From positions 16,430,001-16,494,000 of the forward strand of contig OZ116699.1 in assembly GCA_964199315.1 (NCBI GenBank): 64,000 bases of DNA, read 5' to 3'. Under the pieces are notes generated by a model. The model did not search any database. It saw nothing but the letters and a program-made list of their open reading frames with translations, and was not told where the DNA came from. The stretch's first letter is position 1; each line of letters begins with the position of its first letter. This document shows, piece after piece, positions 8,439-9,509 of the stretch. A program made the position numbers and the translations under genes. Source of the DNA: Orbicella franksi (Eukaryota).

Positions 8439-9509
8439 TCATTGAACCACATCAAAATATCCATCAACGTCATCTATAAGCTGGTACACCCTCCCTCTCA
8501 ACTTCAATCCCGAGTGTCGCAAAAGCCTGATGTATTTGCGACTTTTTAATACCATATGCCATCGCCGAGAAATTCTTTGAACACACTTAATGTCCTTGAG
8601 ATCCACGTCTTTACTGAGTGCCTCGACGATCTCCATGACCCTAAAGTCCGGTAACATTCGATGGCTATTGTAGTATTCCAAGGCAAAGAAAAAACACACT
8701 GCCTCTTCTCCAGTTGAGGTCAGCTGTTGTTGCTCTGTTGTGGTCATAAAGTCCTTCGCGTGTTCGGTAATAGTGTCTTTGTAAGTGAGATTACTATCGC
8801 ACGAACTTAGCGCTATATTCTTAACACTTGCGATGTACATTTTATCGTGGATTTTTTCGAATCTTGAGCCAGATGAGCGAGTAAATAAACCCACTGGATT
8901 CCTGTGTGTTTTGTTTACGTTGTCGTCAACTTGAACAATGTTGCAATTAGCGCCAATTTGTGCGTGATTGTTAAATGGATTTCCCTCTGTGTCAGCCCTG
9001 TTTCCTTCTTCAAGAGTTAGTAAATTTTGCCTGTGCACATCATTTTCGAGTTTTGAAAGCGGTTGACCATCAATTCCCAATTCGGACGGCTCCGTCTGCG
9101 TCGCTACGGTCGAAGTTGTTTGGGGCATATTTTCGGAAGTTGAGGCATCTCCAGATTTGCTTTTGTCATTTTCAAAGTCTCTCAGATCTCCATCGGAAGA
9201 AACCTTTTTCTCCTTCATGGTTCTTTTGCGTCCCTTTATCTTTGGTTTTAAATTCTTTTTTCTCCTTGAAAAGTGTTTTCCTTTCAGTTTTAAGTTTTCC
9301 CGGGAATTTTCTTCGTCTAAAAACGGCCGAAGACCTAAAATGCTTCCCGACAGATCCACGTCACAGACTCCAAGCTCGTTAGCTTCTTCGGTTAAAACTT
9401 CAGGAAAACATCCAACACATCCAACTCCTGTACACAAAATTCGTCCTTCTGTAGTTTTATGAGTTTCAACCCCTGTTGCCCAGCGATTCGCTGTCACGAA
9501 ACCAGCCAT
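8439..9509 (-). CDS. Uncharacterised single-exon 356-aa protein: basic NLS-like stretch, TQT motif, C-terminal RRM-like domain resembling L1/Tx1 ORF1p / ZCCHC3
   Basis: A 1071-nt uninterrupted ORF in ~36% GC-type DNA where chance ORFs are mostly under 150 aa. ATG context aagATGG. Start lies 270 bp from the NCAPH ATG in divergent orientation, and a minus-strand ATTAAA follows just after the stop. The domain call comes from a remembered pattern (inference). Confidence 0.75.
   Translation of the reverse strand: MAGFVTANRWATGVETHKTTEGRILCTGVGCVGCFPEVLTEEANELGVCDVDLSGSILGLRPFLDEENSRENLKLKGKHFSRRKKNLKPKIKGRKRTMKEKKVSSDGDLRDFENDKSKSGDASTSENMPQTTSTVATQTEPSELGIDGQPLSKLENDVHRQNLLTLEEGNRADTEGNPFNNHAQIGANCNIVQVDDNVNKTHRNPVGLFTRSSGSRFEKIHDKMYIASVKNIALSSCDSNLTYKDTITEHAKDFMTTTEQQQLTSTGEEAVCFFFALEYYNSHRMLPDFRVMEIVEALSKDVDLKDIKCVQRISRRWHMVLKSRKYIRLLRHSGLKLRGRVYQLIDDVDGYFDVVQ

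Follow-up and report, generated by a model that had tools for sequence, protein, structure and literature searches.

The window analysed here is a stretch of 64,000 nucleotides from the genome of the coral Orbicella franksi (contig OZ116699.1, positions 16,430,001 to 16,494,000 of the forward strand, assembly GCA_964199315.1). It contains an intact open reading frame (ORF) of 356 amino acids, from an ATG to a stop codon at 8439..9509 on the minus strand, which lies head-to-head with NCAPH, the gene of the condensin I kleisin. We consider it likely that this ORF is a host gene restricted to Cnidaria, belonging to the A-type, anthozoan branch of a family with two small conserved domains. An earlier note, made from the sequence alone, had read it as an orphan gene with a domesticated retroelement RNA-binding domain, placed under the promoter of a mitotic gene. 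Its description of the locus is confirmed: the ORF is intact and single-exon, 269 bp separate it from the start codon of the oppositely oriented NCAPH, and the basic run, the STVATQTE motif and the compact C-terminal block all lie where they had been placed. As the note had also stated, there is no adjacent ORF2; neither a reverse transcriptase (RT) or apurinic/apyrimidinic endonuclease (APE) nor any ORF of at least 100 amino acids was found in the flanks. The term “orphan”, in contrast, is contradicted by orthologues throughout Anthozoa and a family that extends throughout Cnidaria.

The syntenic orthologues beside NCAPH that the earlier note had proposed to look for were found at all eight loci checked, with start codons 232-477 bp apart and always in head-to-head orientation. 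These loci are the window itself, those of Oculina, Exaiptasia and Dendronephthya, and four stony-coral assemblies with orthologues of 92%, 85%, 63% and 50% identity. Since the pairing occurs in stony corals, an anemone and an octocoral, the linkage must be older than the split between hexacorals and octocorals. The other neighbour of the gene in Oculina is beta-TrCP. The identity of the plus-strand partner in the window, whose ATG is at 9779, follows from six exon matches to Cnd2 (PF05786) downstream of exon 1, at 12095-30663, and from the GT..AG junction of exon 1 (9998>10275), which is present in RNA; the neighbour is therefore NCAPH.

Searches of protein databases returned 47 relatives with 98% to 34% identity, mostly full-length and collinear. 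The named orthologues are all annotated as “uncharacterized”. The closest is LOC110049615 of Orbicella faveolata (98%); the others are proteins of Oculina patagonica, Stylophora pistillata, the sea anemone Exaiptasia diaphana (36%) and the octocoral Dendronephthya gigantea. Full-length orthologues are present in stony corals, sea anemones and an octocoral. When 1.84 billion protein representatives were searched exhaustively by HMMER with the profile of the family, only 30 clusters were returned. A further search, started from a distant member, led to a gene model of the jellyfish Aurelia with both terminal domains; with the Aurelia members included, the family therefore spans Cnidaria. The family is named in none of the sources and is not represented by a Pfam model, and no searchable paper mentions any of the named orthologues by its gene identifier. 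A Pfam scan of the protein, its paralogue and distant members gave noise only (Ebp2 in the basic linker, E 0.0035; HNOB, E 0.11).

Within its own genome of 497 Mb the gene is single-copy. A six-frame search found two loci, the gene and one distant paralogue on another contig (an intact ORF of 433 amino acids, 21% identity), and a search with the profile of the C-terminal domain found the same two. The same search tool, applied for control to a repeat of 500 bp from an intron in the window, gave at least 1600 candidates. Copy number and synteny together rule out an active transposable element (TE). More generally, a retrotransposon ORF1, whether active, recent or a decaying fragment, would agree with the intronless structure and with the similarity of one domain to ORF1p, but is practically excluded by the presence of only two loci, by the lack of RT or APE alongside, by synteny fixed across Anthozoa and by ratios of nonsynonymous to synonymous substitution (dN/dS) well below 1.

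In a maximum-likelihood tree the A clade, which comprises the NCAPH-linked genes of hexacorals and octocorals, is separated with a support of 100/100 from a group formed by the B clade, to which the paralogue belongs, and the jellyfish-type members. Being unrooted and having a long jellyfish branch, the tree shows this grouping but not the order of events in the family. Linkage to NCAPH is missing at the locus of the paralogue and at that of P0065, a distant member of the B/M type. The B-type paralogue (G000:C1:16360408-16361706; L002:439-1737, plus strand) lies 4.7 kb from a LicD/FKRP-like gene, and this segment of C1 is without NCAPH. The LicD/FKRP-like gene upstream of the paralogue (L025:1928-3670, minus strand) shares 35% identity (E 2e-78) with an FKRP-like gene of the window, which is found just beyond NCAPH at 33626-35110. 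Because FKRP-like neighbours occur at both loci, the two look like anciently duplicated segments.

Pairwise dN/dS values, determined by the method of Nei and Gojobori for eight species pairs, were 0.23-0.41 for the whole gene, 0.07-0.25 for the N-terminal 60 amino acids, 0.05-0.14 for the C-terminal 94 amino acids and 0.34-0.86 for the linker. The gene is under purifying selection, and this, together with the 47 homologues at 98-34% identity, places the ORF far beyond chance. It is also expressed. RNA of the stretch occurs in 14 runs from at least 11 studies. Raw poly(A) reads of one run (X23) cover 8322-9630 at a depth of about 4-10, with about 9-14 over NCAPH exon 1 and a depth of 0 in 7387-7947. 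Separate RNA contigs represent the gene (8324-9516, 1193 nt) and the NCAPH side (9615-9985), and the gap of 98 bp between them (9517-9614) holds conserved promoter blocks. Bulk RNA gives a hint of joint expression, since the gene and NCAPH have similar depth in X23 and hardly occur in X21. RNA mapping gave no splice junction inside the gene, which is therefore single-exon; its transcript is a separate mRNA without introns. Thus, the gene neither lacks a transcript nor evolves at a dN/dS near 1, two of the outcomes that the earlier note had listed as contrary to its reading. A point against a separate mRNA is one poly(A) RNA contig (X1) that crosses both the gene and NCAPH, in a set of libraries that are unstranded. 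This contig (record 1, 2011 nt) runs unbroken over 8430-12739, from the stop codon of the gene through the intergenic region into the spliced NCAPH exons 1-4. It may have arisen from divergent, overlapping 5' ends that were merged in the assembly, or from an upstream NCAPH start antisense to the gene. Because of this contig and the unstranded libraries, the ends of the transcript are approximate.

The AlphaFold2 (AF2) model, built from 26 sequences, shows disorder outside two terminal domains, which are separated by a linker of about 200 residues. In the C-terminal domain, the order of strands and helices assigned by DSSP is that of an RRM, with a pLDDT above 90. When this predicted domain was compared by VIA-align with 48,161 PDB representatives, almost all matches were RRM or RRM-like RNA-binding domains, aligned over 70-83 residues with an rmsd of 2.5-3.1 A and Z-scores of 6-7.8, which are middling by the calibration of the tool but belong to a nearly uniform list. 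Matches by Foldseek in the PDB were weak overall (DbpA RRM, E 0.02). ESM Atlas searches returned generic RRM-like or arthropod clusters as well as weak leads to DUF4780, PRE_C2HC and zf-CCHC, which are not used as evidence here. Even with E values up to 10 allowed, the domain matched none of the RRM models in Pfam and is therefore termed RRM-like and non-canonical. Two residues, F275 in strand 1 and W317 in strand 3, are invariant and lie at the strands where RRMs stack bases.

Binding of RNA by this domain would fit its fold, but besides the missing Pfam match there was no match in the PDB sequence search, either with the protein or with the C-terminal profile, and none to RNP1 or RNP2; furthermore, RRM-like folds can also act as protein-binding modules. 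The domain could be a pseudo-RRM that does not bind nucleic acids and is used for protein contacts, e.g. as an adaptor for a partner on chromosomes or in mitosis. The absence of the RNP1/RNP2 consensus and of any Pfam RRM model agrees with such a function, as do the tightly conserved linkage to a chromosome-condensation gene and the presence of other conserved short motifs in the linker, LRPFLDE and K-I-x-D-x-x-Y-I...IALSS. The invariant aromatic residues at the base-stacking strands and the RNA-binding activity of the ORF1p relatives (PMC4120745) speak for nucleic acids as the ligand, and we regard a pure protein adaptor as rather unlikely.

The similarity to retroelements depends largely on one sequence. 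In the HMMER search with the family profile, P0066 was the only match without the two-domain architecture (E 6.9e-6 in the whole library). The match aligns residues 40-88 of P0066 with positions 284-332 of the profile, and P0066 was absent from the query alignment. P0066 is an ORF of 475 amino acids, followed on its contig by an ORF of 1255 amino acids with Exo_endo_phos and RVT_1 domains, and is therefore a genuine ORF1p of a long interspersed element (LINE). BLASTP against its N-terminal domain gave 35% identity over 48 amino acids. The element itself (L013:903-2330 and 3183-6950) is a complete-looking LINE of metagenomic, eukaryotic origin, whose ORF1p has an N-terminal RRM-like domain and is without a canonical CCHC knuckle. 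In the AlphaFold DB, Foldseek listed family members first, then two N-terminal domains, one from an uncharacterized protein (E 4e-6) and one from a CCHC-type protein (E 4e-5), and at lower ranks entries named “Gag-like protein” and “Putative 149 kDa protein ORF 2” as well as a coral entry that contains an APE.

Several results weigh against a retroelement origin. The link to ORF1p consists of one sequence, for which neither a word-index search, which returned only P0066 itself, nor a metagenome scan nor the coral's own genome yielded relatives; since none were found, no second profile could strengthen the link. A TE-borne or ORF1p relative of the coral domain was likewise not found in the coral's own genome. 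The match to the L1 ORF1p trimer in the PDB, second in rank, is weak (E 0.03), and in VIA-align general RRMs fit the fold of the domain as well as ORF1p does. The RRM-like domain might therefore be an old cellular domain without any retroelement ancestry, in which case the lone similar ORF1p captured a host domain or converged on it. This explanation, which we take seriously without favouring it, agrees with the single match at E 6.9e-6 to a protein that itself has no detectable relatives, with the absence of a TE-borne relative, with the high rank of TDP-43, CBP20 and Nab3, which VIA-align places as high as any other match, and with the age of the family, which is as old as Cnidaria. It has to be set against the best non-family matches in the AlphaFold DB, which include N-terminal domains from a CCHC-type protein, a “Gag-like protein” and entries of the LINE ORF2 type, with a coral entry among them, against the second rank of L1 ORF1p, and against the intronless structure of the gene in an intron-rich genome. 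On balance we lean towards common ancestry of the domain with the RRMs of the ORF1p type. A retroelement link is plausible but thin, and any transfer could have gone in either direction; if there was a domestication, it was earlier than the split of the cnidarian classes. The domesticated RNA-binding domain of the earlier note hence stands in part: the RRM-like fold and an ORF1p relative, P0066, were found, while ancestry depends on one match of E 7e-6 and weak fold matches.

Type I ORF1p is defined by RRM domains upstream of CCHC knuckles (PMC4120745). The coral protein gave no match to zf-CCHC or Transposase_22 at E up to 10. With the non-long terminal repeat (non-LTR) ORF1p proteins that carry RRMs (types I and II in the scheme of Khazina and Weichenrieder, summarised in PMC4120745), it shares a non-canonical RRM-like fold, a basic character and an intronless coding sequence (CDS), and its family has significant profile similarity to the N-terminal domain of one genuine ORF1p. 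It differs in that no ORF2 follows, in that the gene is not repeated, and in having no CCHC knuckles, coiled coil or C-terminal domain (CTD) of the ORF1p kind. In addition, its RRM-like domain is C-terminal, whereas that of ORF1p is N-terminal or central, and the gene is distinguished by an N-terminal cysteine module of its own and a very long fixed synteny. Also comparable are the domesticated host genes derived from ORF1p or gag, L1TD1 (PMC11925450) and ZCCHC3, which are likewise single-copy, selected host genes with a nucleic-acid-binding domain of the retroelement type; the coral gene differs from them in its lineage, Cnidaria, in its far greater age and in the tentative nature of its TE ancestry. 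ZCCHC3 is called “gag-like” in PMC10351740, where RRM, ORF1p or a Tx1 origin are not mentioned.

According to the earlier note, the N-terminus of the protein was merely new and disordered. This is contradicted by a motif that the note had missed, H-x8-C-x4-C-x2-C (THKT..GRILCTGxGCxGC), which is the only cysteine motif of the protein and lies in its most conserved part. Its residues H17, C26, C31 and C34 are invariant throughout the family (alignments A1 and A4), including the paralogues and jellyfish-type members. G22, I24 and T27 are invariant as well, and T19 is nearly so once the widest members are added. In the AF2 model the N-terminal unit (amino acids 9-50) forms a beta-hairpin and a helix with a pLDDT of about 60-70; folded alone, the module reached a pLDDT of only 57, too low a value for its fold to be searched meaningfully. 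The HCCC module is probably a small zinc knuckle; because the N-terminal model is of low confidence, this assignment rests on the conservation of the residues. Further along, in the disordered linker, the basic composition of amino acids 81-101 is kept in stony corals and weaker in anemones, and this run may mediate nuclear import.

The TQT motif of the linker lies in a region with a pLDDT below 50 and was read in the earlier note as an anchor for LC8 (DYNLL). Nearly all orthologues from stony corals and anemones have [V/G/A]-[A/G]-T-Q-T at this point of the linker, with ASQT in one clade, and the conservation of the motif is 0.77 compared with a linker mean of 0.37. LRPFLDE and the K-I-x-D-x-x-Y-I motif mentioned above form further conserved islands. 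A potential partner is at hand, as the coral's own genome encodes an intronless LC8 of 89 amino acids. The genome has a tandem pair of intronless LC8/DYNLL copies with a spacing of about 2.2 kb (G000:C12:1390548-1390799 and 1392807-1393058; L014 and L015), and a third, on C6, is partial with an in-frame TGA. A complex predicted from two chains of this LC8 and amino acids 118-160 of the protein scored 0.85, and the best of three controls 0.14; the mark used for this score is reached by 51 of 78 solved complexes and by 2 of 108 mismatched pairs. Three runs share at least 78% of their contacts, with a partner pLDDT of at least 52. In the predicted complex, amino acids 130-139 follow strand 61-68 in one LC8 subunit and make contact with residues 34-40 in the second, a placement that corresponds to the canonical groove. 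The assignment as an LC8-type motif thus gains from conservation in hexacorals and from docking in silico.

Two considerations limit it. The motif is missing from the octocoral orthologues and the B-type paralogues, and LC8 docking therefore cannot be the core mechanism of the family. Moreover, the model may have passed from its memory of solved TQT complexes; as many TQT-LC8 complexes have been solved, a high score expresses likeness to them and is not proof of binding. Among the known clients of LC8, Panoramix, ASCIZ, Swallow and Nup159 have a TQT anchor within disordered sequence. The coral protein resembles such clients in carrying the motif in a disordered linker between folded or functional modules and in the predicted strand addition in the groove of the dimer. 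It differs in that it has a single motif, that this is confined to hexacoral orthologues, and that docking on LC8 is here a prediction.

The head-to-head gap has features of a shared divergent promoter. An alignment of six stony-coral intergenic regions (A2) shows the conserved blocks GGGAGGGGAGGG, TCACGTG and GACGGTTG beside the gene. An E2F-type site, TTSSCGC, occurs exactly once per intergenic region and in the same orientation in eight of eight regions, including those of the anemone and the octocoral, whereas about 0.07 sites are expected in each sequence when a single orientation is counted. The window and the octocoral Dendronephthya have the 12-mer GGCGCGAAGCTC in common. Judged from sequence, the region fits an E2F-driven bidirectional promoter of the cell-cycle type, and the conserved E2F-type site in the gap lends in-silico support to the suggestion that the promoter is shared with a mitotic gene. 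Bidirectional cell-cycle promoters of E2F/CHR-type pairs are similar in having a gap below 500 bp, few TATA elements, an E2F-type site, here in 8/8, and one mitotic partner; the coral pair differs in that the partner gene is taxon-restricted.

Features of the gene and its promoter in the window (positions refer to the whole stretch; aa, amino acids; UTR, untranslated region)
Feature	Position	Strand	Remark
CDS, intronless, 356 aa + stop	8439..9509	-	A-type (NCAPH-linked) branch of a cnidarian family lacking a name
3' UTR, minimum extent	8324..8438	-	RNA contig X2 record 6 (8324-9516)
C-terminal RRM-like domain, aa 268-351, beta-alpha-beta-beta-alpha-beta	8457..8708	-	AF2 pLDDT 82-97
STVATQTE, aa 133-140, LC8/DYNLL anchor-type TQT motif	9090..9113	-	direct sequence read
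Basic NLS-like (nuclear localization signal-like) run RRKKNLKPKIKGRKRTMKEKK, aa 81-101, disordered linker	9207..9269	-	read from ORF
N-terminal module, aa 1-50, putative zinc knuckle	9360..9509	-	invariant H17, C26, C31, C34
Shared divergent promoter	9510..9778	.	blocks conserved in six stony corals
G-rich box GGGAGGGGAGGG	9537-9548		promoter element
E-box TCACGTGG	CACGTG at 9569-9574		promoter element
CHR-like TTTGAA	9579-9584		promoter element, some species only
E2F-type GGCGCGAA	9611-9618		promoter element, putative
NCAPH (condensin I kleisin, Cnd2) exon 1, divergent partner	9779..9998	+	ORF, N-terminal peptide, RNA junction

Just past the 3' UTR of the gene lies a long C-rich tract (8209-8251), which is G-rich on the strand of the gene. 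Reads seem to be cut at this tract, which was skipped as a repeat in read placement. On the other side, the NCAPH intron between the exons 10275-10360 and 12095-12187 contains a dispersed repeat of about 450 bp at 10566-11126, for which the genome has at least 1600 candidate copies, with identities of 77-90%. RNA contigs of this repeat reach depths in the thousands, and loose ends are numerous among its reads; the element is an ordinary interspersed repeat that is transcribed, similar to short interspersed elements or miniature inverted-repeat transposable elements (SINE/MITE-like). An Rfam scan of window positions 7000-13000 detected no RNA family.

From these observations we propose how the protein could act. 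In the nucleus it would bind RNA or single-stranded nucleic acid. The TQT anchor of the linker would, in hexacorals, recruit an LC8 dimer, by which two chains would be paired into a bivalent binder. The protein would be made together with the condensin I kleisin from the shared E2F-type promoter, that is, in proliferating cells. Its RRM-like domain would share ancestry with the RRM-like domain of non-LTR ORF1 proteins, and a domestication, if it took place, would predate the cnidarian radiation. Carried to its full extent, this model describes an anthozoan-specific condensation partner: an LC8-dimerised, bivalent binder of RNA or single-stranded DNA, kept stoichiometric with the kleisin by one E2F promoter, with an RRM of the LINE ORF1p type recruited before the cnidarians diversified. 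In this complete form we hold the model to be improbable. In terms of known kinds, the modelled features would make it at once a host gene that carries an RRM of the retroelement type, the gene of an LC8 client, and a member of a bidirectional pair of the cell-cycle kind.

If the model is true, the obligatory linkage to NCAPH would reflect a functional coupling, for example in clearing or tethering RNA on mitotic chromosomes; alternatively, the coupling would lie in the silencing of retroelements in dividing stem or germ cells. The family, which spans Cnidaria and is without a Pfam model, has a new architecture, in which an HCCC module and an RRM-like domain are joined by a disordered linker that carries an LC8 anchor. 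A bidirectional pair of such age that includes a lineage-restricted gene is rare and points to shared regulation or function. The gene may be a very old case of a retroelement-type RNA-binding domain in the service of its host, and it is a candidate for cnidarian-specific biology of proliferating cells.

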